Positions 3,022 to 62,550 of a stretch of DNA of 64,000 nt are shown here, piece after piece; the stretch's first letter is position 1; every line of letters starts with the position of its first letter. The translations under genes were made by a program, and so were the position numbers. The stretch is from Octopus sinensis. Taxonomy: Eukaryota. The DNA lies in the NCBI RefSeq assembly GCF_006345805.1, contig NC_042999.1, positions 145,204,001-145,268,000 on the forward strand, given 5' to 3'. The notes beneath the pieces were generated by a model that was not told the origin of the DNA, ran no database searches, and saw only the letters and a list, made by a program, of their open reading frames with translations.

Positions 3022-3690
<669 letters not shown>

Positions 3691-3691
<1 letters not shown>

Positions 3692-6600
3692 TTCGACTCG
3701 TATCAGTCTACGCACCGCCCTTAACAGGTCGGGCGGATTTCTTTCGACGTCTAGAAGTATTCTTGGGAACGTCTCGTCCTTTACTCTTAGTGGGGGATTG
3801 GAATGCTACCTTGGACACGCATGTAGACTACGTGGGTAGAGACAGAAACAGAAGGGGATGCAAATGCCTCAGAGACCTGCTCAGACGATTCCAACTGTCT
3901 GACAGGTACCGACTCGACCACCCAAATGCACCAACGTGGACATGGAGCAACCGCAGTGGGTCGTCGAGATCGTATCTAGATAGGATACTGTGTAGGACAG
4001 TAGACAAGGATAACTTAGGATGTCCACAATTCCACACAGTCAGCTACACGGATCACAAATTGGTGACGTGTACGCTAGACTTAGATAAGGCACATAGACA
4101 GGGTCCTGGGTACTGGAAACTAAACGCGTCTTTCCCATCGAGACAAGTTTTCAGAGACCGGATTAGCACACTAGTAAAGAGGGCTTTGACGGGAGCCATC
4201 ATCAACAACAAATGGTGGTTTGCCCTCAAGAGAGCAGTAAAAGCAGAAGCGATTAGGTACAGCAAAGCACTAGCCATAGATAGAAATAGAGTAGAGGGTG
4301 AGCTAGTTAAGAAGCTAGAAGAGGCAATTAGAAGCGGCATCGCATCCGACGTTTTGGCGGCGAGGTTGGCCCTCGACCAACACTTCAACGCCAAACACGA
4401 AGGATGTGCTGTCAGAGCTAGGATGCGTGCTCTAAGGAACGAAGGTGTTGGAGCCGCGAGAGAGGCCCGGGTGGCAGAGGCGCAACAGGGCAACAAAGCC
4501 ACCATTCGGTCACTGGTAGATGAACAGGGGCGCGAATTGCTCGAGCCAAGTAAAATGTGTGAGGCCTTTCAGCAGCATTTTGCCCGACTGTTCGGGACGA
4601 GTGGAGGGCAAGAACGTAGGGTAGACTTCAGTGCCTACCTACATAGCCTGCCACGACTCTCGACAAGAAAGGCAGGGTGCTGCGAAGGTGCCATCACGGC
4701 GGCGGAAGTGCGGGAAGCGATGGCAGAATGCTCGAGGGACAAATCACCGGGTTTGGATGGTCTACCCTACGAATTTTACTATTGTATGCCAGACTTGTTT
4801 GGAGACGTCTTGGCAGCGGTATACTGCAACTGGCAGCAAAACGGGAGCATACCCGGTTTTGTGAGTCGAGGAGCTGTAACTCTGCTGAAGAAAGATCCAA
4901 ACAAGGGAAACATTATAGATAACTTTAGGCCAATCACTCTGCTCAATGCAGACCTGAAAATTTTGACAAAGGTGTTAGCCAAGAGGTTGGCGCTTGTCAT
5001 GGAGAAACTGGTCGACAACGCACAAACGTGCGCCGTGCCGGGCCGGAGCATCCATGACAACCTCCATCTGATGCGCTACATCATAGACAGGGTAGTTAAC
5101 GAACCTGGCATGGGTGGGGCCCTGATCAACTTGGATCAATCGAAAGCCTTTGATAGGGTAGACCATCGATACTTGGGGGCAGTCCTGAGAGCGGCTGGTT
5201 TCGGTCCCGTCTTCCGCGGCTGGATAGCTGCCTTGTACAGAGGCATCCGTTCGGTAATTCGCGTAAATGGACATCTATCGAGACCCTTCGACATTGCACG
5301 TTCGGTCCGTCAGGGATGCCCCCTCTCGGCGCTTCTATACGTATTGACTCTTGAGCCACTACTGCGGAAGCTGGCGACTCTGAGGGGCATCCCGCGAGAA
5401 TTAGGATGCGGGACGAGCGTGTCTGCATACGCGGACGACGTCACCGTCATAGTGTCAAGCCACGAGCACATCGAGCGGGTCGGCGAGACACTGAAAGACT
5501 ACGAAGCGGTGACAGGAGCAAAAATCAACCGGGAAAAGTCAGTGGGCTTGCGGCTCGGCACCTGGAGAAGCAAACCCATGCCGTCCACCAGTACCTCCGT
5601 CGTGGGACGCTGGACAGACGGCCCGTTGAGTTGCTCGGGGTCTGGTTCGGTCCGGACCTCCAAATGGAGAAGAACTGGAACGAGATAACGAGTAGGGTGG
5701 TCACTCTCGCCCAGCAATGGGCCGAGAGGAAACTGTCCCTAAAAGGTCGGGCGGAGGTGGTGAACGCGTACATCGCGTCCATCATCTACTACCGCCTGAC
5801 CGTCGTACCTTGTCCCGACCCTACCATCACCAAACTAGAACGCATCCTCTTCCGCTTCTTGTGGAAAGGATGCGTCCCGATGGTCAGGCGATCCATTTGC
5901 TGTCAACACCCGTTAAAAGGAGGGCTGGGCATGCCGTGGTTGATGATGCGCAGACACGCGCTGAGACTGCGACATCTCCGGCTCTATGTAGACGACGGTG
6001 AACAGGTGTGGTCGCCGTTTGTGAGGCACGCATTCCCGCAACTCGTCTCCATGACCGAACTACAGTCGTGGATCAAAAAGAGGCCGAGGAAGGGCGAATG
6101 GCACCGCGAGTGTCGCGTTGCTCTCAAGCAACTCTGCCGTCCCGGGTCGACCTTGAGTGACTTCAACACAACCAAAGCATTCTATAGGGGATTAGTGGAG
6201 GGGAGGTACGACGACGAGCTCGGGGCAAACCTGGGCGTCGACGAGGAATACCTGACCCGCCTGTTTCAAACGACTTTCGGCCCGGGACCTATGGACAACT
6301 TCCAGAGATCCCTGGCCTGGCGGTGCTACCGAGAAGCGCTACCCGTTCGGGATAAGCTCTATAGGCATGGCTCGAGAAACACGGGGCCGACCTGCCCGAG
6401 ATGCGGGCAGAGCGACGAAACCGCTCTGCACGCAATCGTGCAGTGTCCAGCAATTTCCCACCTGTGGGCTTATGTCGAACGACTGCTGTCACGTGTGGGA
6501 CGTGTCGGTTTATCAGCCGAGTCTATCGTTAATATCGTCACGCCTCCTTCCTTCAAACGGGAAGGAAGAGCTATTTTTATCATACTTGTGGCTATGGCGA

Positions 6601-7199
6601 AAGAATGTATCTGGTGGACGCGTCTGAAAGGATTAGAGACAAACACTTTCCTCTCTGGTCAATCTCTCATCAACTTCTTCAAGTATCACTTGAAGAAAAA
6701 AGTGAGAGTAGAGAGGCAAGTTTTGTCTAGTGAATGTTTTAAAAAAGATGGGTGAATGTAGCAAGGATGGCACGTATGAATGACGAAGCCACCTTGACTA
6801 TGATTCTATGAACCGTAAAAATTAATACAGAGAGTTGCTTATTTGCAAAAAAAAAAAAAAGAAATATAACATGTGACTTCATTGACCGAGGTTACCGTGG
6901 TCTTTTCCGTAGGCTTTTCTTTCCACGGGTAAACCTCACCTGTCCTCCCCTTTACACTTCATATTGACATTTCTGTGATAACGATCCCTATTGATCAATT
7001 TTTTTTCCTCCCCCCTTTTTTTTTTAACCCCCCCTTTTTTTGTCCTCTTTCTCTCCTTTTACGATCCCTTTTGATCGACCCCCCTTTTTTATTTTATTTT
7101 ATTATTATTATTATTTTTTTTTTTAAACCTTCAAAAGAAAAGCTCTACCTTGTAATTTGTTCTATCTGTGTGCAGCCCTGTGTGGCTAATAAAGAAACA
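3691..7199 (+). mobile_element. 5'-truncated Tx1/L1-clade non-LTR retrotransposon (APE-RT-CCHC ORF2 plus 3' UTR)
   Basis: Starts mid-endonuclease (FRLVSVYAP, GDWN, SYLDRI), then GPGYWKLN, RT motifs KSPGLDG, RPITLLN, DQSKAFDRV, RQGCPLS, YADD, and C-terminal CPRC...H....CP. Single-base frameshifts near 5620 and 6745. Ends with AATAAA followed by (TATC)n. Confidence 0.95.
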
Positions 7200-7313
<114 letters not shown>

Positions 7314-7764
7314 TCTATCTGTCTGTCATATATGCTTGCATGCATATATTAGTGTATGCGCATACACATATTCATGAGCGCGTGCGTGTGTGCGTGTATG
7401 TGTATATGTGTTTTCACCATCTGTGTATACGTGGACACACATGTATGTATGTATGTATGTATGTATGTATGTATGTATGTATGTATGTATGTATGCATGC
7501 ATGTATGTATGTATATTTTTATATTATCGTCGATAATTTTGGTTTGATAATTTACGCACGTATCAGTTTCTATTTCAGAGTATTCAATTAGTGTTTTCCA
7601 GTAGTAAATTTAATATATTTTGTGTACCGAATTTTCACACAGTTATCACTTGCTGGAAATCAACGATGCTCTAGTGTCTTCATACTATTATTTTATAAAT
7701 CTACTCAAATTATTATATTGCTCAAACTGAAACACGGCTTTGGTGACATCTGGGTATGTCTACC

Positions 7765-7865: not shown

Positions 7866-10570
7866 TTCACACCTCATAACTTTTCCAAATCTCTCTGAAT
7901 GCTGACTGATTCGAAATGTACATCCGTGGCTTCGATATAAACAATATAAAAGATTATTAAATACTGAAGCTCTAAAGTGAATAGTAGGATAAGGTCGGAA
8001 CCCTACAAGTCTCTTTAAAGTAATACCACACACTGCTTCCTCAAAACTACTACATTTATTATTGAAGTTTTTTTAATATTACATATCAGAATAGGGTGGC
8101 TAGCTGCTAAAATCATCATCGGTATTTCTTTCGTCGTTATGTTCTGGGTTCAAATTCCGCCAAGGTTGACTTTTCATTCCTTCGGAGTCGATAAAATAAG
8201 TACCAGTTGTACACTGGAGTTAGTGTAATCGACTTAATCCCTCTCCTGAACTTGCTGGACTTGTACCAAAATTTGAAACCGATATTACGTATAAGCGATC
8301 TTCAAATAAATTTACATTAAATTTATTAACAAGAAACATTAGAAAATGTTGAATTATTCAGGTTTATTAATTCCTCTGACAAAACTCAATTATGCAAATG
8401 AAGAATCTGTGATAGTTTCAAATATTTTTTGCACTAATTTCAGCACTAAAACTTCTGTTATATTTCTGTACACATATTGCATTGGTAAATTATATTTCAC
8501 AAAACATCTTTCGCCACTAAAAGCATTAGGATATTCATCTAAACATATTTTTTCTCGAATATTTAGAATTTTTTTAACGATAGTCTGCTATATCAAGACT
8601 TTCGGTTTAGAAGCGTGAAGTTCGAAGTTGTAGCATGATAGCAGCATGAAATCCAGAGACAATAGCTAGTTAGTATATTCATAGTCAAGTATCAAATCAA
8701 AGACATGATTAATAAAAAATTAAGAGTTTTACAGGTTGTCAACTCTCTTTTTCATCAGTAATTTCGCTAATAATTTCTGAAAGGAAAATCCTATCGCAAA
8801 GTCTGCTAGTTCAAATATTGTTAAAATACTGGATCCAAGGAGAAGACCAAGAGCGCCTCCAGTATCACCTGAAATAACAAACGTGTTGATGGTTAAGGAA
8901 AATAGCTATAAGAAAAGAATAAAAGAATGCTTTCATATGTGATGATGATACGATGATGATGGTGAAGAAGAAGATGATGATGATGAAAAACATGAAAATA
9001 AAACTTGAATTCTAAACACACACACAAGCGCATAGATACTAACTCACAGATTATTGAGAATAAAATGATACTCGTGGTATCAACCATCATCACAGCACTA
9101 CTCCAGAACGGGACACCAGTCAGCCTCATTTTTGCTAATTTACAGCTGGGCGAAATGGAACAATGTGAAATTAAGTGTTTTGCACAAGAACACAACGCAC
9201 TAGTCATGATCTTGCGTGTAACACCCGAACTACTAAGTCAAGCGGCAGTACTTTAGTGGTCATTCGATCTGCTATAAAAAACCACGAAATGCTCGTCAAA
9301 GCACACTGAATGGATAATGTAATCCGGCGTACATTATTCCTGACACGATGATCATGGCTTGAATGTCTTTGATCATAAACCTGCTTGGTCAGGAGTGACT
9401 GGAAGGGGTAAGGCGGGTTTCGGCAACTGGGTGAGAAATTATTAGTTGTAATAATCATAAGCAACTAAGTACAAAGGCTTAATATTTGAGAGGGAGAGAG
9501 AGGGGGAGAGATAGAGATAGAGAAAAGGGTGGGTAAATGGGAAGATGTGTGTATCATTCAACGGCTTAAGGTAGGTAAATAAAATGAAATGATACAACGT
9601 TGATAAGGTTTTATAAATGTATAAATGTACTCACACAGAAGGGAAAAGAAGCCGTAGGCCACTTGGTCAGTGATTATCTCGTAACTTAATTGCTTGTAGA
9701 AAAACGCAATTTCAAGGATGTTCTCACTAAAATATAAAATAATAATATCATCATCATCATCAACAGTCTTCTCTTCTCCCTTTCCTCAACCACGTCTTCA
9801 TCGTCATTGTTATCATAATTATCATTCTCAACCTCCTCCTCTTCATCTTGCTGAGTTTTACGAGCCTACGAGGGAGCTTGTAAGTAGTCGCTCGACCTGC
9901 TTGAAATAGATAATCTGTTTCAGATATCTTACCGCGGTCAACGAAGAAGAGTGCATTGGATGATGTAACCCTAGATACATTGTGTTCGAAAGAAACGACG
10001 GGATAACCACGACAGCTAGACATGCCTTTGATCATTGGTTAGTTCAAACAGAGCTGACTTGGAGCTAAAGATCACCCAGAATAACTCCAAGATGAAAGCT
10101 TTATCATCAAAATTATAAAAAAATTACAAGCATAGAGAATACTCAACTGAATTTATAAAGGCCTGAAATCGTAAGTATGATAAAAAGAAATGCAGATGAA
10201 ATAATCATTCACTATAAAGCTGGTCATGACCATTTTCTGTGTTCCCAAATCTCTTAGGAAGATAAGAGGAAATTTTTGCTCAGATAGGAGACCTGGTCTG
10301 AATGCTTGCAATAGAGTGAACACTGTTAAATGTAATAATGGGCTAGGTGGTGGTATTAATCGAGAGACAGATTAAGTTTACTAAATGTAAATGACTTGCA
10401 TCTAAAACAACAGAATAATAAGCACTATACTGATCTTATCTTTCTGAGTAAGCGACATTGTGAAAAAGTTATGCTAGACAGAACATATTTTATAGAAAGA
10501 GCACTGGGAAACTTAATCAATTCACATTGTTTAATTATTATGATTAAAGGTTGACTGAATTCATAAATTA

Positions 10571-12823
10571 CACTGGGCAAAAAAAAAAAACCGAAAAAAA
10601 GAAAATTCTTGCTATTTAAACTTTTTCAGCTGATTTAGAATAATTTTAGGGTGCTGGATCCAAATCTAACATCAGTTTTCAGACAGAACAAGTAGTTTTT
10701 TTTAGTCATTCACAGCATCAGCTTTTCCAACCAAATGCTAATATTGACAAAGTAATAGGCTATTTGCTTTCGATTTTCATTCATATACTCATTACTGAAA
10801 CAAAAATAAGTGCTGATAGAGGGTAAGGTATTTATTTTACTTTGTTATCGCTGTAATTATAGTAAAGTTCTCCTCACAGTAGGCTATTGATATTAGGGTT
10901 AGGGTTAGGGTTAGGGTTAGGGTTAGTGCTGTTAAAACCAAGTACATCAAATAAAAGAGACAGGTTATATAAAAAGTAGTTTAGTTATTTATTAAAGTGA
11001 TTAATGTTTGAAATTTAGAGATGGAAAAAATTGTTTCGTGATAGCCATAGCTTCAGTACATTCTATAATAATTTTAAGGATTTTTTTGAGAAATATATTT
11101 TGATGTTTTACAGTAATATTTACAGTTGATTAATTTTATATTTTAGTTTACTGACAGGCTTCCTTGAGTGTTGATTTAGGTTATTACTGTATGTATTTAT
11201 GATGAACAGAAAAGTTTGTGTTAATCATCCGGACACCTTTTGTTACGTGTGGGGAAAATTTATGCCAAAAGATCAGAGAAATAAGCTTACAAATAAATTT
11301 TAAAATGCTTACAAGCTTTACTTTGGGTGCAAAGTTGGGGATCAAGATAAACTGTGGGCGCCTCATGTTTGTTGCAAAAACTGCTACATAGCACTAACCC
11401 AATGGATGAATGGCAAACGGAAAAGTATGCCATTTGCAGTACCAATGATATGTCGTGAACCAACAAACCAATGGAATCTTTTACACGATGGTGTAAAATG
11501 CTCATATTTTCGAAAACAGCATACAGAAATGTATGAATTTTTTACGGAGAAAGATGGCATTTGTTTTTGTTGTGATGTTGAAGGACTCCTACGTGAGATG
11601 GGGTACGGACATAATCCTGCTTTGCTGGAGATTCCAGCAAAGCAAGCCTAAAAGCTGTTTTGCTGCATAATGGCAATCAAAAACCTTCAATACCATTAGC
11701 ACATGCTGTAGGATTAAAGGAAACTTATTAATCAATGGATAAAATTTTGAACTTGATTAAATATTCTGAGCACGAGTGGAATATATGCAGGGACTTGAAA
11801 GTTATTGGTTTACTTCTTGGGTTGCAAATAGGGTATACAAAGCATCAGTGATTTTTGTGCCTTTGGAACACCAGAGATGTCAAGCATCACTATGATCAAA
11901 AGGGTGGCCAAAGAGAAGTGATTTCGCTCTAGGGAGATACAACGTTAAATATATCCCTTTAGTTGATCCTCAGAAAATTTACCCTCCTGTCTTAAACTTG
12001 GCTTGTTTAAGAATTTTGTTAAGGCCATGAATGAAGACGGTGAAGGATCCAAATGACTCTGAAACGTTTGTAGCAAGAGCGAAGCTAAGATCAAAGCTGG
12101 TGTTTTTAATGGACCAGAAATTCGCACACTAATTTGTGATGCGATTTTCAAGAAAAATTAAGCCCGGCAGAGAAAACTGCCTGGGAAAAGTTTGTTTCTC
12201 TTGTAAAATGTTTTTTGGGAAATGAAATATCATCTAACTACGTTGCAATTGTGAATAATTTTTGAAAGCTTATAAGAAACTTGGGGCAAGAATGTCTCTA
12301 AAAATTCATTTTTTCCACTCTCATCTTGACTTTTTTCTACCCAATATGGGTGATGTAAGCGATGAGCATGGTGAGCGATTCCATCAAGTAATCAAAGAGC
12401 TAGAAAAGCGCTATAGTGGCAGACTTACATCAAACATGCTGACGGACTATTGCTGGTTTTTAAAACGAGAAGCGGAATGCAACTTAAACGTAAAAGAAAA
12501 CGCCAAAGCTATTTTTGAAAAACATAAAACTAATAATATTCACATTACACTTTTGTTTTGTGTTGTATTGGCTTTAGAGCTACTTGTCCACCTTGTTGCT
12601 ATTGTTCTTATACCAAATAATGGTAATTTACGCTTAACATAACATTCATTTTATTTGTTATGAATTTTCACATTATTGTAATTTTGATAACAGTATAAGA
12701 ATAATGATAGCGCAAAAACGTCACGTGCTAAAACCAAAATAATTACAGATTCGGAATCAGCGCTCCCAAATTACCTATGAGCATCATTTCGTCTAATAAC
12801 AGCAACAATTTTGTTGCCTAGTG
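10571..12823 (+). mobile_element. Chapaev3-type (CMC superfamily) DNA transposon, decayed transposase
   Basis: Termini CACTGGGCAA...TTGCCTAGTG with a TTA target duplication on both sides (10568-10570, 12824-12826). Transposase fragments FCYV.G...YFGCKVGDQDKLWAPH.CC..C, MPFAVPMI.REP and MSLKIHF.HSHLD...GDVSDEHGERFHQ. The family assignment is from recalled motifs plus the TWA TSD. Confidence 0.8.
10893..10926 (+). repeat. Interstitial telomeric repeat (TTAGGG)5 TTAG
   Basis: Read directly from the sequence. Confidence 0.9.
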
Positions 12824-13190: not shown

Positions 13191-14706
13191 CTTACAAATA
13201 AATCGTTTATTGTGTTTCTTTCTTTAAATTTAGTTACATATTCTTTTACGGTTTTGTGCCAGAAAAAATAATCGCGGTCTATGGTGCCAAACAGTTTTGC
13301 CATATTGCTACCTTCCCGATAGCCAGCATACTTGTCTTGAAGATCTGCAGTTACATTTTCCAAAGGAAGCGAGAATTTCGTATAATTAGCATATTCATAA
13401 TAAGCGTAGGAATCACGGTCTTGAATGATATATTGCCAGAGCAATGCAACACTTTCGTTGAGTTTAGTCCAGCTGTGATGGAGCAAAGAACTACGTTCAC
13501 GCAGTTCTTCCATAAATATTTCCAGGTTTATCATATTCAAAACGTGGTTAGGAGAATGCAATATGGCTGCCAAAGATATTTTCGTTACTGATGTGTTCGT
13601 CAAGTATTTAATGATATCCGAAGAGACAGCGAAAACATTTTGTGATGACGTAAGATTTATATGTTTTTGTTCAATTTGGAGACTGGTCAAAGAATTGTTC
13701 ATATCGTTAATAATTTTCCGGATGTTATTCATAGAAGTTTGTAATTTAGCTGCTTTTGATTTGATAATTCCAAGAGCATATTTTGTAGTAAAACTATTGA
13801 AAATACTTTTTATGGAATTAAATGTCTTGGACGTTTGAGTAAATTTGTTTGAGACCTTCGTAAATTTTGTCAAATTAAATCCAGAATCTCTTGTATCCAA
13901 CATATCAGAGAAAATGTACAAACATTCTTTTAAACTAGTTACTGTATTATTAAATTTAATGCTATAATTCGTTTTTGATTGGTTTAATCTGCTGGTTAGT
14001 AACCGCTTAGGAACAGCATAAAAGTTATGACTTCTCGGTACATTAAAATATCTATAACGAAATATACCTACTCCGCTTTTTAACGACTCATAATATTGTG
14101 TAAAGTTGTCTTCCGCCTTTTCGATCATGTTCAATTTGGAGTTAATAGTCATTTTAATACTATGGATTAACATTTCAGAAGCTCGTTGGTTTCCAGAGCT
14201 GTTTATAAATTCATCCAGTTTCAAAAACATATTTTCCAGTGTATAAACGTAATTATAAAAATCAAAACTGACGTGGTGGAACGTCCGTTCAGCTATGGCT
14301 TCCCACGGCCGCTCAAAGTTCTTGTCTATTAAGTACTTCTGATAATTAATCAGGAACAGTTTTGAAGCATACACTTTCTCCATTTTCTTGGAAATATTTT
14401 GAAGAATGGCTAAATTAATTTTAATTGTCATTTCAAGTTTTTCCAGCATCACCGTTCGAAAGGCTACATTTGATGCATTGAGATTTAGGAGCATATTTCG
14501 AAATTCAGAGACTGATCTAGAGTCCATTCTGTGCTTCACTTCTTTAGCATTTATAAGCTTCTGCTTCACGTCAGCCATACGTGGATCCATAATCAATTTA
14601 CTAACTTTATTTTCCGAATGTGCGGTATATGAAATTGAAGGATCGAATAGAAGCATGTTACACGGCAAAGGACAATCGCAATTTAATCGAAAGGAGTAGA
14701 ATTTGT
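13191..14706 (-). CDS. DEG/ENaC exon 8 (1516 nt): end of thumb, beta10 and a ~480-aa extracellular insertion
   Basis: Acceptor ccattttcAG, then (D)KFYSFRLNCDCPLPCNMLLFDPSISY (the C.C..PC motif), running open into the 493-aa ORF; donor AG|GTAATT just before the ORF stop. An alternative donor at 13195 is possible. No downstream TM2 exon was found in the window. Confidence 0.9.
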
Positions 14707-20733: not shown

Positions 20734-20790
20734 CCCTTTGTGGGATGTAGCAGGTTATGAAACTAACCAGTGAACAAAGAGGTACTGAAT
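20734..20790 (-). CDS. DEG/ENaC exon 7 (57 nt): thumb, second part
   Basis: (D)SVPLCSLVSFITCYIPQR; acceptor tctatttcAG, donor G|GTAAGT; phase 1/1; supplies the two thumb Cys otherwise missing. Confidence 0.9.
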
Positions 20791-20906
20791 CTGAAATAGA
20801 GTCATCAAAGATGGTGAGAGGATTAACTCAACAAACAAAATATTATTAGACTATTATTATTATTTTCAACGATACATACATTACATACATACATACGTAC
20901 GTACGT

Positions 20907-21165
20907 ATGTGTTTATGTATTTATTTATATATACAAAATTATATGTATTTATTTACATATGTATTTATGTATTTATTTATATATACAAAATTATATGTAT
21001 TTATTTACATATGTATTTATGTATTTATTTATATATACAAAATTATATGTATTATTTACATATGTATTTATGTATTTATTTATATACAAAATTATATGTA
21101 TTTATTTACATATGTATTTATGTATTTATTTATATATACAAAATTATATGTATTTATTTATATGT
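20907..21165. repeat. About 5 copies of a 52-bp AT-rich minisatellite
   Basis: Unit ATGTATTTATGTATTTATTTATATATACAAAATTATATGTATTTATTTACAT. Confidence 0.85.
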
Positions 21166-21216: not shown

Positions 21217-23374
21217 CCGTGAAATGGGGTTACTTTGAACAGAATATAGTATTTTATTTCGTCTTATTGCTTGTTACTAAAATGTCTTACAGAAGTGTTT
21301 AAATGTGGTGTTAAACTTTAGAATTACATTTCTATGATAGTATAATTTCAATACATAAAGTAAAATTTGTAAATATAACTTTGATTATCCACCCGAAGAA
21401 AGAATTTGTCTACTTCTTCAAATTCCAGCAAAACAAACATTTTTGCAATATATGAAAACTTTTGTCTGTAGCTAAAGCATTTCTTGCATAAAATATACGA
21501 GCTTTTGTTAAAATATAATGTTAATATAACTAGTTAAAAATTTTCTATTGAAGTGTTTTTATAACTTTGGTATCTTTGTAAAAACTTATATGACATGTTA
21601 CCCCACTTTGCTTATCCAGCTGCTACTACGGTTCAAACTAATAGAAGTGCCAAATATAAGTTAAGTATTTAAGATTTTTAAATGTTTTCCCTATTTATGG
21701 ACAATATTTCACCCTTAGAATTAATGAGGTGTAACCCCAAATTTATGATTTTTTTTATTATCGCTTGATAACCAGAATTAGTTTTTCTTTCTGTTGCAAA
21801 GTTTATTTCTTTAAACCATAATCTGTTTTTTTTTAAGGGTCAACTTGTAGTTTGGATCGAGATTAGCATTAACCAAATAGTTATGCCAAAATTTATAATA
21901 GAAAACCTGGCTCTCGAAGCTATAAATCCTATAGCCAAAAGAGTCTGGATAAAGCAGTGACAGATGTTAAAGCAAAGAAAATTATCCTTCGAAAAGTCAA
22001 TGTTGTTTATAAAATTCCAGTCGGAACTCTGAGCCATAGACTGAACCATAAGCATAGGAGGCAACCTGGTCACCCTTCAGTGTTCAGAGAAAAAGAAGAC
22101 GCAGCGTTTGTTGCTCACATTATAGCTGTTGCAGAATGGGAATTTCCATTTGATGCTATGGATTTGAGAGTGCTTACCCATAATTATATCACAGCTCAAG
22201 GTCGCACAGTAACGCAATTTAAAATCAATTTTCCTTCAGCTGAATGGGCTAATTTATTTTTATAGCGAAAGAATTCCCAGTTAGTATCACGCCTGTGCCA
22301 AAATATCAAAAGTTCCAGAGCATGTTTAAGTGCTACAGAAGTATCCTCGTACTTCCAGCACTTAAAAGCGACTCTTATATTTGATGGAAAACTTATCTCT
22401 CCAAATAACATATTCAACTATGACGAGACTAACTTGTCAGACGATCCGGGAGTGAAATAAATGCTTGTTTAAACGGAGAGTCAAACATCCAGAAAGAATA
22501 AAAAACACTTCCAAAGCAGCAATATCAATTATGTATTGCGGCTCTGCATCGGACCAGTTAATGCCTTGCTATGTTGTTTACAAAGCGGAAAATTTATGGT
22601 CAACAGGAACTGAGAGAGCACCAAAAGGGACTCGGTTTAAGCGACGTAGTAGTGGATGGTTTGACGCATGTTGCTTTACCGACTGGTTCGAATCGTGTTT
22701 GCTCCACAAGTCAAAGGAATTCCTGGAAGAAAAGTTGTTATTGGTGTTAACTTAAGCAGCCATTTTACAGAAAAGATGATGAAGCTTGCCAAAGAAAACA
22801 ACATTGCTCTTGTATGCCTACCATCTGATTCCACACATATGCTTCAACCACTTGATGTGGCATTCTATGGGTCTCTTAAAAAAAGTTGGAGAAAAATCTT
22901 AAATGATTGGAAGGCTTATGACAGGAAGAGCTCAAAGACCTTAAATGAAGATGCTTTTCCTGCTCTGCTCACACAGCTTCATGCTGATCTTTTTCATGAC
23001 GGTGTCACCCATAGCAGGTATCTAGAAAGTGGGTTCATGAAATGTGGAATTCACCCGTCACATCCAGACAAAGTTTTGGATCAGCTACCAGACCATGAAG
23101 TGAGCAAAGAAGACGATGAAGTCATCAATGTAAGAGTTGAATATAAGTAAAAAAGCATTACTGTTCAAAGTAACCCCAAATCAGGCGTTACTTTGAACAG
23201 CGACAATTATATTAAAAAATAATCAAATATTGACTGCAATTTATTCTTCTTTCATATATCAGTTTACCTACTTATTCTCCCTAACATAGTCCAATTTAGT
23301 TAAGATTGATATAAAGGTTATGAAATTATTGCAATAAAAAGTCTAAAACTGTTTAAAGTAACCCCGTTTCACGG
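21217..23374 (+). mobile_element. pogo/Tigger-type (Tc1/mariner, DDE_1) DNA transposon, decayed
   Basis: TIRs CCGTGAAATGGGGTTACTTT / AAAGTAACCCCGTTTCACGG with a TA duplication. HTH (IPVGTLSHRL), NYDETNL, SSGWFD...F..WF and LP..STH.LQPLDV..YG.LKK motifs, broken by stops and frameshifts. Confidence 0.9.
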
Positions 23375-24700: not shown

Positions 24701-24735
<35 letters not shown>

Positions 24736-24796
24736 CATTATTATTATTAGTATCATTATTATTAGTATCATTATTATTATTATTATCATTATTATT

Positions 24797-24838
<42 letters not shown>
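24700..24838. repeat. (ATT/ATC)n microsatellite
   Basis: Read directly; source of the poly-Asn, poly-Leu and poly-Ile pseudo-ORFs. Confidence 0.95.
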
Positions 24839-24840
<2 letters not shown>

Positions 24841-33481: not shown

Positions 33482-33635
33482 CGTTAACTTCTGGCATATA
33501 GCTTAGTCGGCATCCACAGGTTTCCACTAAAGCGTATGTGACACATTCTGCTTCACAGGACGAACGGGAATATTTGGGAAACAGGTTTAATTTCCTATTT
33601 TCGCACATACCACGAGGTTTTGGCAAACCTATAAC
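33482..33635 (-). CDS. DEG/ENaC exon 6: thumb, first part
   Basis: VIGLPKPRGMCENRKLNLFPKYSRSSCEAECVTYALVETCGCRLSYMPEVN matches the YS...C...C.......CGC....MP pattern; phase 0/1. Confidence 0.95.
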
Positions 33636-34148: not shown

Positions 34149-34330
34149 CTCCACAACTTGGAGTCCAAAGAAAGAATTAGTTCCTGTGGCTGAAGCTAGA
34201 CCTAAGTTTTTTATAGTCGGCACATCATGGGGGTTATGAAACAATACCTTTAGGCCGACACTTTTCTGACCTCCTGACATATATTCATACTGCTCCACAT
34301 TTAAGGTGAGTTGCAGGCCGTTTTCAATCC
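34149..34330 (-). CDS. DEG/ENaC exon 5: palm/beta-ball
   Basis: (G)IENGLQLTLNVEQYEYMSGGQKSVGLKVLFHNPHDVPTIKNLGLASATGTNSFFGLQVVE matches the G..NGL.L.L..EQ.EY and G.KV..H...P signatures; acceptor ttttattgtAG, donor GAG|GTAAGT; phase 1/0. Confidence 0.95.
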
Positions 34331-36620: not shown

Positions 36621-36739
36621 CTGATGAGGCTACTTTGACAGGGTTTGAAGCATCTGTGTTGAAGCCATAACAAACTCCTTCGTCGGTGAATATTGTAGTG
36701 AAATTCTCAGGTCCACATCTCTCACTGCTCCAGTGACAG
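36621..36739 (-). CDS. DEG/ENaC exon 4: beta-ball/palm
   Basis: CHWSSERCGPENFTTIFTDEGVCYGFNTDASNPVKVASS matches the C.W...C....F....T..G.CY.FN signature; phase 2/1. Confidence 0.95.
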
Positions 36740-39637: not shown

Positions 39638-39811
39638 TCTATTATCATATCTTCTTTAGTATGAGATATTCGTTGACGAAGATCTCTCTCGGAGATATTC
39701 AGTGCCTCGGCTTGCTGGATGAACTCAGAAGAAAATGCAATGCTCCTGTTTTCTGCCTTGTTGACATTTTCAATCATTCTGTATATGCCTAATTTATAAG
39801 CCTCGGTGGCC
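39638..39811 (-). CDS. DEG/ENaC exon 3: finger domain
   Basis: (R)[57 protein letters not shown](D); acceptor tttgctttcAG, donor GA|GTAAGT; 174 nt, phase 2/2, open in frame. Confidence 0.9.
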
Positions 39812-45197: not shown

Positions 45198-45365
45198 CTA
45201 AATTTATTCTGATTGCATATGGTAATTGTTGGGAAAAGCAACGAGTCATTGTAATTAACATCCAAGAGGACACTGACTGGATATTGGTAGAAGTATAGAA
45301 TACGGTCAAGGATCTGAAATAAAGCCGCAGCTACACATGTCATCAAGAGGAGTAACCAAATCACC
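45198..45365 (-). CDS. DEG/ENaC exon 2: TM1 and the post-TM1 FPTITICNQN motif
   Basis: VIWLLLLMTCVAAALFQILDRILYFYQYPVSVLLDVNYNDSLLFPTITICNQNKF; acceptor ttttctccAG, donor AG|GTAAGT; phase 2/2. Confidence 0.95.
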
Positions 45366-47896: not shown

Positions 47897-48066
47897 TTCT
47901 GAGGCCTTTTGCTGCTTTCCGAGAAAGCATTTTTCAAGCCGTGCAAACTGCAGTTCATTGCAAAATGTAGAAACATGCTTGAAGGCTTTTCATCATCCGT
48001 AGGAACTTCGATGGTAGGACCTTCTTCTACATTTCCTTTTTCGAAGCGATTTCTGACTGAAGTCAT
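47897..48066 (-). CDS. DEG/ENaC (ASIC-like) channel, coding exon 1: MTSVRNRFEKGNVEEGPTIEVPTDDEKPSSMFLHFAMNCSLHGLKNAFSESSKRPQ(K)
   Basis: ATG at 48066-48064 with an in-frame upstream TGA; acceptor tttctatttacAG before 48087 implies an upstream UTR exon; pre-TM1 'SLHG' motif of DEG/ENaC; donor AA|GTATGT in phase 2, matching exon 2. Confidence 0.9.
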
Positions 48067-58639: not shown

Positions 58640-58961
<322 letters not shown>

Positions 58962-59409: not shown

Positions 59410-61300
59410 ACTATGATGTGTGGGGGTCTCGGGTTTCTGCGTAAAGAATTCTTTAAACTAGTTTTATTTCATATCAGAATCCCTTTAGTATAGGTTCAGT
59501 ACTTGACTGGTGGATGGAAAGGGTTACACAAAAGCAAGAGGGCTGGTACTAAAACGTGAGTTGAATAAACCAAATTGAAAATAAAAATGCAATTAAATTA
59601 TAAAGCAAATATAACAAAACAACAAAGTTTGAAGAAGTATAAAGGTGATTGAAACAGTGAGTGAATGGCACTGGGTCCAAGTCTTGGGTGTACTTTGAAG
59701 GTGATGCTAACATCATTTGGACAGTGCTGATGGAATCTTTTCCACATCATACAAATAATGTAGCGTTCACGGCGTCGTTGGAATGAATAGAGTTTCAGCT
59801 TTTCTAGTCGACCCCAGTAGTCGAAGTATGACATGCCATCTATTTTTTTTTCGTGATTGACCTTTGGGGAGCTTCAATTTTCATAATGTTTTGTTTCGTG
59901 TGGGGAGACTACAGTGGACAGCAGTATTCAAGGTGAGTTCGGGCAAAAGTAGAGAACTGAAGGATAATGGTGTGTGAATCTCTCGACTGGAAGGTTCTGA
60001 GAATCTAGGAACACATTCTGCGGGCCATGTTAACTTTGCTGCTTATATGTGTAGCCCAGCTTGTGTTGTTGTCCACAGTTACTTCCAAGTCTCTGATGTT
60101 GTTAGATGTCATGAGAATTTCACCAGAAGGAAGGGAATATGGGAGTTTCAGAGCGTCCTCCCTTCCAAAGTGGATCAGTTCGAATTTGTCTTCGTTTAGT
60201 AACATGTTGTTATTTTCCTCCCATTGGACAACAGCCAGTAGGTCTGACTGAAGGCTTATCCGGTCATCCACGCCATTGACGACCTTCTGGTGCTTGGAAT
60301 CATCAGCGAAGATTCTGATGTTACTGTGTTTGATGATATCAGTAATGTCATTAATATAGATGAAGAGAAGTGGGCCCAATACAGTGCCTTGTGGGACACC
60401 ACTACTGACTTTGGTTGGGCTGGATTTGACTCCTTCGACTACAACATGTTGGGTTCTGTTTGACAGGAAGCACTTGATCCACTGCAGCAGCTTTCCATTG
60501 ACATCAATATTGGACAGCTTTCTCAGAAGAATCTTATGATTAACCCTGTTAAAGGCCTTGCTGAAATCAATGTAGATAACATCAACCCTATCCAAGACTC
60601 TCAAAATGTCATCAAAATGATGCAGTAGCTGCGTCAGGCAATCCCTTCCATTACGGAATCCATGCTGGTTGGAGTTCAGTATATTATTACTCTCAAGGAA
60701 GTGAGTCATTCGCGATCTCACCACTCTCTCAAATACCTTAATGATATGAGAGGTGAGTGAGATTGGACGGTAATTCACAGCAAGGGATTTGTTTCCTTTT
60801 TTGAAAACTGGGACAACAGACTGGGATAGAAGGTTTTCTGATATATATCCAGCATCCAGTGAGTTCTGCCACAGATTGGCTAGAGGGGGTGCAAGTTGGT
60901 GTTGACACACCTTCAAGACACAAGCAGGGAACGTATCGGGACCTACTGCTGAATTCAGCTTGATTTCCTTTATTGCTGCTAAGACATCAGGGGCGCCAAA
61001 GGTTATGTCCGATAAGGTGTATTGGGGAGTAACATCACTGACACACTTCAGATCAGCCATATCAGGATTGCTGAAAACAGAGCAGTATTTTTTCTGCAGC
61101 ATTTCTCCCATGGTTTTGGCATTGTCTTGAAGAATGCCATTTTCATCAGTCAGAGGGCCAACAGTAGAGCCAGTGACTTTGTGTTTTCTTTTGCAAATGA
61201 AAAGAACACTTTGGGATTAAGTTTGATCTTCGGGTCTTCTCTGATTATTGATGATAGACATCATATTGTTTTGGAGGTTATGTTTCTTAATATCTAGTGA
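59410..61300 (-). mobile_element. CR1-clade LINE, 5'-truncated, RT region largely open (368-aa ORF 60005-61111)
   Basis: YRPISLTSHIIKVFER, NQHGFR, IYIDFSKAF, SGVPQGTVLGPLLF, FADDSK, and downstream YWGRLEKLKLYSFQRRRERY. Confidence 0.9.
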
Positions 61301-61606: not shown

Positions 61607-62223
61607 CTTTTTTTATATTTCTACTGCTTTTAAATAAAGCACATTACTCTACCTCTGGTATCTGAGTATTCTTTTTTCCGCCTTGTTTCACATTTATGTG
61701 CTTACTATCATGTTCTTAAGAATGAAATCAACCTCTCTGTCTATATATCTACCCTCTTTATAATGTTGGCAAATGAAATAGGGATAATAATGTGCATTGT
61801 CCGTTTAATTGGAAAATTCTATAAGTGGCTGAAGATTGCTCGACATTTTAAAACTGATGTAATACTTACAGTGTTTAATAAAATGAAGTAGCATGAAGCA
61901 ATTGTACTACTCTACCTTGGATATACTTGTTGCTTATTTTGATTATAATCACCCCATTTGATTTATATGGATAATACCATACAAAAGTCTGGTGCCTTTA
62001 ACTTAAGTACTATATTCATCTGAATCTAAATTTTGCAGAACTTATATATATATAACATATATATATATATATATATATATAAATACATATATGCTTATAT
62101 ATATATTTATAAATATACATATATATATGTATATAATATATGTGTATATGTATTATATAATATATATACATACATAGATTATATAATATATATATTATTA
62201 TATATATATATATATAGATATAT

Positions 62224-62277
<54 letters not shown>

Positions 62278-62328
62278 TATATAATATATATAGACAAATG
62301 TATAAATATATATATATGTATATATATA

Positions 62329-62550
62329 TATAAACAACGTATAAACACGGGCAAAAGGAATTATTTCTATGCTAATATGCTGATAACAGACTTCTAAATC
62401 GTCAATTTCCACATAGCTTTCCTCAATTTCAGCACAACGTATTTCTGTAGTGGGTATAATAATATGTGGAAAATGACGATTTAAAAGTCTGTTATCAGCA
62501 TATTGGCATAGAAATAATTTTCTTTTGCCCTTGTTTATAAGTTGTTTATA
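62329..62550. repeat. Fold-back (MITE-like) inverted repeat, arms about 87 bp
   Basis: 62329-62415 pairs with 62463-62550. Confidence 0.85.

Follow-up and report, generated by a model that had tools for sequence, protein, structure and literature searches.

The channels of the DEG/ENaC superfamily are a textbook case of one fold that answers to many stimuli (protons, peptides, shear and touch), and the route by which force reaches their ectodomain, the 'tether' question, is still debated. In the model for MEC-4/MEC-10 of C. elegans touch neurons, force from the matrix on the ectodomain drives gating, and the tethers are separate matrix proteins, MEC-1, MEC-5 and MEC-9; the extra domains of MEC-4 lie in its finger region, not in the knuckle. 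The ectodomains of FaNaC and other peptide-gated DEG/ENaCs of molluscs and annelids are enlarged in the finger domain, the part that makes up the peptide site. To our knowledge, no solved DEG/ENaC structure has a long insert between strands β10 and β11. In α-ENaC, N-glycans of the palm and knuckle tether the channel to the extracellular matrix and are needed for its activation by shear force (Knoepp et al. 2020, PMC6955349; Barth et al. 2021, PMC7958617). In ASICs, proton activation has two core determinants, His73 of the wrist and Lys211 of the palm (mouse/human ASIC1a numbering; PMC10507113), and published trees show no ASICs in two sampled molluscs (PMC9949801). Here we describe LOC115209554 of Octopus sinensis, a DEG/ENaC gene in which one giant exon encodes a large, predicted helical domain in the knuckle region. 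The gene lies on the minus strand of a stretch of 64,000 nucleotides (nt) of contig NC_042999.1 (positions 145,204,001 to 145,268,000), hereafter the window, in whose coordinates all positions are given.

The octopus channel resembles each of these systems in part. ASIC1-5 (2QTS, 6AVE, 9E4A) provide the best match in both sequence and fold and have the same order of elements: HG, transmembrane helix 1 (TM1), finger, β-ball, ten-Cys thumb, CxCxxPC, β10, α6, α7, β11-β12 and TM2, followed by acidic residues. Unlike ASIC1, the octopus protein has about 472 residues between β10 and β11 in place of 18, and its selectivity filter is GSS rather than GAS; it also lacks both proton determinants of the ASICs. 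As in α-ENaC, the knuckle region carries sites for N-glycans (14 sequons, one of them near-invariant). In α-ENaC, however, the knuckle is a short pair of helices and the glycan itself is the tether, whereas the octopus protein adds a folded domain of about 460 residues. MEC-4/MEC-10 belong to the same superfamily, but the relation is remote, and the 'degenerin-like del-10' names of some family members are annotation labels only. Like FaNaC and other peptide-gated DEG/ENaCs (7YVB, 8ON8), the protein is lophotrochozoan and has an enlarged ectodomain; its match to them (E=8e-28 and 6e-13) is nevertheless far weaker than that to ASIC1 (1.6e-54).

We found that LOC115209554 is a complete DEG/ENaC channel gene of ten exons, ASIC-related by similarity ranks, and that the giant exon is a constrained coding exon of this gene. 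The gene belongs to an old, lophotrochozoan-wide, ASIC-related subfamily with a length-conserved, sequon-rich, all-helical domain of about 460-470 residues, which we call the tower domain, between α6 and α7 and thus between β10 and β11.

Results

The exons were located by tblastn, with ASIC1a and a Littorina homologue as queries, and by motif searches; the ASIC1a sequence served as a probe only. All ten exons have AG/GT splice sites and compatible phases, and they join into a coding sequence of 2772 nt that encodes 923 amino acids (aa) and ends with TAA. The features are as follows (AF2, AlphaFold2 model).

47897..48066, minus strand: exon 1, 170 nt; ATG at 48066, cytoplasmic N-terminus, SLHG (HG) motif; donor GAA/gtatgt, in frame with exon 2
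45198..45365, minus strand: exon 2, 168 nt; TM1 and the post-TM1 motif FPTITICNQN; AF2 helix 54-84
39638..39811, minus strand: exon 3, 174 nt; finger helices; found by tblastn with the Littorina homologue, splice sites fit
36621..36739, minus strand: exon 4, 119 nt; β-ball including CYGFN
34149..34330, minus strand: exon 5, 182 nt; palm and β-ball strands (GIENGLQLTLNVEQYEY)
33482..33635, minus strand: exon 6, 154 nt; first half of the thumb, five Cys
20734..20790, minus strand: exon 7, 57 nt; mid-thumb, two Cys
13191..14706, minus strand: exon 8, the giant exon, 1516 nt, residues 342-847; end of the thumb (CDCPLPC), β10, α6, tower domain, most of α7
13205..14590, minus strand: tower domain proper, about residues 381-842; predicted all-α, between α6 and α7; 14 sequons, one Cys
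14099..14107, minus strand: sequon N542-F-T, kept in 32 of 33 family members
9635..9726, minus strand: exon 9, 92 nt; end of α7, β11, β12, start of TM2 (S)ENILEIAFFYKQLSYEIITDQVAYGFFSLL; found by tblastn with ASIC1a
8729..8868, minus strand: exon 10, 140 nt; TM2 with the GSS filter (CDTGGALGLLLGSSILTIFELADF), short C-terminus, TAA at 8731..8729; AF2 helix 868-922

Exon 9 is bounded by the acceptor ttttag/TG and the donor CTGT/gtgagt, and its phase fits the donor at 13191. The assembled product is identical over 923 of 923 residues to the RefSeq 'uncharacterized protein LOC115209554 isoform X1' (Octopus sinensis), whose record (chromosome CM016861.1, GCA_006345805.1) has the same span of 39.3 kilobases (kb) as the rebuilt gene. 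The gene is thus already annotated. The first-pass annotation of this DNA had placed the TM2 exon to the left of the window. That exon exists and lies inside the window, with β11/β12 at 9726..9635 and TM2 and the stop at 8868..8729. Other parts of the first reading were borne out: the single 1516-nt exon (14706..13191) with canonical splice sites and 504 open codons; seven upstream exons of 57-182 nt, rebuilt here as 170, 168, 174, 119, 182, 154 and 57 nt; and the canonical DEG/ENaC motifs, all of which were found.

The protein scored 288 bits against the Pfam family ASC (PF00858; cut-off 23.6, E=1.9e-85); the insert interrupts the match, which falls into two stretches. In a phmmer search of the PDB, ASIC1 (1.6e-54) ranked above FaNaC (8e-28) and ENaC (1e-25). 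In the alignment, residues 33-368 correspond to ASIC1 22-381 and residues 841-910 to ASIC1 399-468, and the two aligned stretches thus leave about 472 residues in place of the 18 of ASIC1; the short knuckle typical of ASICs has about 18-35 residues between β10 and β11. Foldseek with the full model listed ASIC structures first (E=3e-26, about 27% identity).

The hallmarks of the superfamily are present along the whole protein. SLHG occupies residues 39-42 and FPTITICN residues 101-108, followed by CYGFN and CDCPLPCNMLLFDPSISY. The ten thumb cysteines are at positions 282, 298, 302, 311, 313, 328, 336, 351, 353 and 357; C311, C313, C353 and C357 do not vary within the family, and the remaining six are at least 90% conserved. 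Two predicted transmembrane helices (54-84 and 868-922 in AF2) flank the ectodomain and align with TM1 and TM2 of ASIC1. The filter GSS is at 889-891, the degenerin site (aligned to ASIC1a G430) is Ser, with Ala as the family consensus, and the acidic residues following TM2 are kept. In the phmmer alignment, H72/H73 of ASIC1 correspond to P86/V87, and K211 to Ser; P86 is near-invariant across the family. As both core determinants of proton activation are absent, we regard the channel as ASIC-related but do not file it as an ASIC. Near the pore, the octopod LOC115209554 lineage reads CDTGGALGLLLGSSILT as against the family consensus CDIGGSMGLFxGASVLT, and Octopus also has a second paralogue ('degenerin del-10') nearer to the consensus; the departure in the LOC115209554 lineage may reflect relaxed or new function.

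A polypyrimidine acceptor (ttccattttcag/AC) precedes the giant exon, whose frame is open over 504 full codons, and a strong donor (AAG/gtaattta) follows it. In this AT-rich window, with a stop probability of 0.070 per codon, the probability of 504 codons without a stop is about 1e-16. The longest open stretch in 200 shuffles of the window was 200 codons, and the sole longer open frame in the window is that of a retrotransposon elsewhere. With a length of 3n+1 nt, the exon could be skipped only at the cost of a frameshift: an exon 7-exon 9 junction, read from the sequences, runs into a stop after 13 codons, and CDCPLPC and β10 would be lost as well. Any channel product must therefore include the giant exon.

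Comparison with a Logan contig from a related octopod showed 89.7% identity in the exon and 70-81% in the flanking introns, with no gaps in 1516 exon nt versus 9 gap columns in about 300 intron columns. The ratio of nonsynonymous to synonymous substitution rates (dN/dS) of the exon was 0.48, with a synonymous excess over neutrality (chi-square p=6e-5). With no indels at this ratio, the insert is constrained; neutral evolution had been a concern of the first-pass annotation.

Evidence for a spliced message came from a cuttlefish paralogue. Its cluster, which includes the Sepia pharaonis 'ASIC2', holds at least ten intronless contigs of 3.0-3.8 kb, each with an uninterrupted open reading frame (ORF) of 917-929 aa that includes the insert. 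Introns interrupt the genomic genes at many points, and the contigs must therefore be spliced mRNAs that retain the insert. One of them, a Logan contig of 3474 nt from SRR29271460, is a full-length transcript that encodes 929 aa. The presence of at least ten similar transcript contigs in other runs indicates that the cuttlefish paralogue is readily detected in RNA sequencing.

To obtain structural models, AF2 was run on family alignments of the full-length protein and of the insert only. For the full-length model the mean predicted local distance difference test score (pLDDT) was 83, and most of the insert scored 85-95. Modelled by itself (pLDDT 88.5; predicted template-modelling score, pTM, 0.77), the insert was all-α, with helices of 81-91 residues, in line with the helix-like stretches first noticed in the sequence. 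In the model, β10 (358-370) is followed by a short helix (373-380), the all-α region, a second short helix (843-849), β11/β12 (850-865) and TM2. The long predicted helices span residues 404-488, 515-552, 620-710 and 727-769 and are interrupted by a conserved non-helical stretch, 553-588. At 1.5 Å per residue, helices of 81-91 residues measure 12-14 nm. We read the two short helices of the predicted model as α6 and α7; the knuckle is then kept, with the module between them. The first-pass annotation had described a module that replaces the knuckle: its position at the knuckle and its origin in one giant exon hold, but α6 and α7 are retained and nothing is replaced.

The insert contains exactly 14 N-x-S/T sequons and exactly one Cys, the numbers counted originally, and the inserts of other family members have 5-14 sequons each. 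This number of sequons, together with the position of the domain between β10 and β11 of the ectodomain, places it outside the cell. The sequon richness and the conserved N542 fit an exposed, glycosylated extracellular domain.

We could not link the tower domain to any described domain. A Pfam scan of the exon translation and of 23 family inserts gave nothing above noise, a profile of the insert against all PDB sequences gave only chance coiled-coil matches (E≥0.08), and Foldseek with the insert-only model found no relative in the PDB at E≤0.001. The best Foldseek match was the sensor domain of the chemoreceptor McpZ (8f7n; E=0.033, probability 0.77), for which homology was rejected at a TM-score of 0.18-0.23 and a root-mean-square deviation (rmsd) of 24 Å. 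The list otherwise held generic rods and coiled coils (Rad50, MukB, axonemal proteins) and further chemoreceptor bundles. As a test for internal repeats, hhalign was applied to four segments of the family alignment and to its two halves. No comparison exceeded a probability of 6.4%, and the domain is thus not built of duplicated modules.

In word-index searches, the single exon and the N-terminal exons each drew one match, that of the single exon being an 82%-identical ORF in genomic Logan contigs of a related octopod (SRR11869385, SRR11869391, SRR11869394). The impression that the exon is near-unique was overturned by exhaustive HMMER and alignment-seeded searches. The exon profile matched 140 clusters at E<1e-3; of these, 78 passed a threshold of E<1e-10 and 32 one of E<1e-30. 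The O. bimaculoides orthologue (923 aa) had E=0, and members from other phyla had 1e-81 to 1e-30. All named members are molluscs, annelids, nemerteans or a brachiopod, and no named match fell outside Lophotrochozoa. The insert is therefore not specific to octopus, and the suspicion that long-insert relatives occur in other lophotrochozoans proved correct. The genera and species are as follows.

Cephalopods: O. bimaculoides, O. vulgaris, Argonauta, Sepia
Gastropods: Haliotis, Babylonia, Aplysia, Batillaria, Nucella, Elysia
Bivalves: Pecten, Mizuhopecten, Mytilus, Ostrea, Mya, Mercenaria, Solemya, Tegillarca
Annelids: Capitella, Paralvinella
Nemerteans: Lineus, Tubulanus
Brachiopod: Lingula

The full-length matches all carry Pfam ASC, and among the profile matches the tower domain was seen in no other protein context. 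Several genomes have multiple copies, some of them on one contig. The insert region is 487-495 aa long in 30 of 33 aligned members (453, 464 and 533 aa in the exceptions) and has recurrent motifs: KNFxRxRDAMEERT, N-[YF]-T, GxPIFxYKF..PR..N..I.PK.LL, KSxFY, FFxExRxRG....DxW and IWxxIxxDxDxxxYYxYxN.T.FL.N. The octopus versions of the subfamily motifs are KNFERPWEAIAERT, NFT(542), GVGIFRYRYFNVPR and FMEELRERSSLLHHSW. Between octopus and annelid, identity is 17% in the insert and about 38% in the core.

The exon itself is old. In the annelid Paralvinella palmiformis (JAODUP010000740.1, 3777-5432) a single exon of 1656 nt likewise covers the homologous region, in a compact gene of 5.7 kb versus 39 kb in octopus. 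The start and end of this exon and the end of the next fall in the same alignment columns as in octopus, and the giant exon is therefore no octopus peculiarity. In Aplysia californica (KB942367.1) the insert is divided among several exons, which points to a lineage-specific gain of introns.

Discussion

What might the tower domain do? We propose, with a probability of roughly 0.4, that it acts as a tether or antenna outside the cell, built into a sodium channel sensitive to mechanical force or contact, a proposal that draws on the predicted model and on analogy with α-ENaC. In the trimer, three domains would project from the apex of the ectodomain as a tower or antenna, whose size, to judge by helix length, would be roughly 12-17 nm. 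It would be anchored on β10 and on α7/β11, elements that run on into the β11-β12 linker and TM2, which govern gating and desensitisation in ASICs. Matrix or mucus held via the N-glycans, fluid shear or a bound macromolecule could displace the tower, and the displacement would be passed on to the gate, because the tower is rooted on palm strands that lead via this linker to TM2. The tower would then be a protein-encoded, glycan-studded elaboration of the glycan tether of α-ENaC. A more far-reaching version, in which an entire class of lophotrochozoan DEG/ENaC channels would bear, on β10/β11, a helical tower that is trimeric, heavily glycosylated and more than 12 nm tall and converts displacement of matrix, mucus or fluid directly into gating, is tentative and, taken in full, doubtful. 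If true, it would be the first degenerin-type mechanosensor with the long-postulated extracellular gating tether inside the channel polypeptide itself, and cephalopods might use the tower channel to sense touch or flow with their suckers, skin or statocysts.

Several observations weigh against the tether proposal. A dN/dS of 0.48 represents only moderate constraint. The mRNA evidence concerns the cuttlefish paralogue rather than this octopus gene, and no transcript contig encoding exactly this octopus protein was recovered, the only record being genomic. The insert evolves faster than the rest of the channel, with 85% identity between O. sinensis and O. bimaculoides (core 92-97%) and 17-27% across phyla (core 38-47%). 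The full-length pTM of 0.62 leaves the orientation of the domain relative to the channel uncertain, and the direction, height and packing of the tower come from helix lengths only. Finally, the best structural neighbour, although non-significant, is a ligand-sensing domain and not a tether.

This last point leads to a different function, that of a ligand-binding sensor, in which the long antiparallel helical bundle would bind a soluble or surface cue (peptide, sugar or ion) and gate the channel allosterically, as in bacterial chemoreceptors. McpZ-type sensor domains (8F7N) are likewise long antiparallel extracellular helical bundles on a membrane signalling module, and the McpZ match heads a Foldseek list that includes other chemoreceptor bundles. 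The match is, however, non-significant (E=0.033, TM-score about 0.2, rmsd 24 Å), stands amid generic coiled coils, comes without sequence similarity and involves another host protein and another kingdom, and thus serves as an analogy only. As is usual in chemosensory receptor families, there are multiple copies per genome, some on the same contig; the insert has also diverged more quickly than the core of the channel, and many DEG/ENaCs, such as FaNaC and ASIC, are ligand-gated (PMC9234716). No conserved pocket was identified in the insert, though, and a structural rod would account at least equally well for the conserved length (487-495 aa) among molluscs. We consider a sensor possible but doubtful. 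A rod could also act as an assembly or spacing device with no gating role, which would enforce homotrimers, exclude short-knuckle subunits or fix the distance to an apposed surface (cuticle, mucus, cilium or membrane). Such a device would agree with helices of 81-91 residues predicted at high confidence, with a length that is strictly conserved while the sequence is poorly so, and with structural neighbours that are all rods or coiled coils. It is unlikely, as canonical DEG/ENaCs trimerise without such a domain (solved ASIC, ENaC and FaNaC structures), conserved non-helical motifs (KNFxRxRDAMEERT, GxPIFxYKF..PR..N..I.PK.LL, FFxExRxRG....DxW) suggest specific contacts, and attachment to β10/β11 would hardly be neutral for gating.

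These functions all presuppose that the insert is part of the mature channel. The alternative, that the open frame is a retained intron, an exonised transposon or an annotation artefact beside a short true knuckle, or that the gene is a pseudogene, is highly improbable. Against it stand the chance of about 1e-16 for the open frame, the absence of indels with dN/dS below 1, the insert in the intronless cuttlefish transcripts, the frameshift and the loss of CDCPLPC and β10 on exon skipping, and the occurrence of homologous, equally long inserts in four or more phyla, without exception within ASC-domain proteins. It could draw on the absence of a Pfam family for the insert, on a composition that tracks the AT-rich genome (rich in N, K, I, S and F), on the exact gene's transcript not being recovered, and on the RefSeq label 'isoform X1', which implies further predicted isoforms. 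As to a transposon in particular, the insert has no similarity to transposon proteins; the RVT_1, zf-RVT and DDE_1 remnants of the window lie elsewhere, and the insert matches none of them. The tower domain is almost certainly real, extracellular and part of the channel.

In the open-access literature and bioRxiv (subscription-only papers were not covered) we found no description of a long-knuckle or insert-bearing DEG/ENaC or of the gene and protein accessions. Neither the DEG/ENaC phylogenies (PMC9949801, PMC9822975, PMC10507113, PMC9234716) nor the Octopus nociceptor paper (PMC12919962) mentions a knuckle insertion or such a subfamily. What is already public are protein models under automatic names only ('uncharacterized', 'ASIC1/2/4-like', 'degenerin-like del-10'); what is new is a DEG/ENaC channel with an extracellular domain not previously described in the literature searched. 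The subfamily places a folded, rod-like, glycosylated domain, conserved over hundreds of millions of years, where the force-relevant knuckle glycans of ENaC sit, and so offers a deletable handle on the tether question. A confidently predicted domain of about 470 aa with neither sequence nor fold relatives would also lend itself well to a new Pfam family, an entry for which would improve the labels of dozens of mollusc, annelid, nemertean and brachiopod genes. For cephalopod neurobiology, the gene is flagged as a candidate sensory channel.

Other features of the window

Remnants of mobile elements surround the channel gene. Downstream of it, on the plus strand at 3763-6755, lies a non-LTR (long terminal repeat) retrotransposon with a GC content of 54% versus a background of about 35%; an endonuclease remnant, RVT_1 (8e-32) and zf-RVT are found in two overlapping ORFs, and the element is therefore frameshifted. 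A second retroelement fragment, a minus-strand ORF of 368 aa with RVT_1 (7e-26), lies upstream of the gene at 60005-61111. The 12.7-kb intron between exons 6 and 7 contains a DDE_1 transposase fragment (22668-23150, plus strand; 3e-10). In the intron between the giant exon and the β11 exon, an ORF of 126 aa on the opposite strand (12262-12642, plus strand; MKAYKKLGARMSLKIHFFHSHLDFF...DEHGERFHQ) has no Pfam match and looks like the tail of a transposase-derived protein.

An AT-rich minisatellite with a 52-nt unit (20902-21160; 5 copies, 96% match) lies about 110 nt upstream of exon 7. The window also contains the following short tandem arrays.

3022-3123: (ATCT)n array
7200-7324: (TATC)n array
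24701-24839: (ATT)n array
58640-58960: (TGC)n and (CTA)n arrays
62043-62332: (TA)150 array

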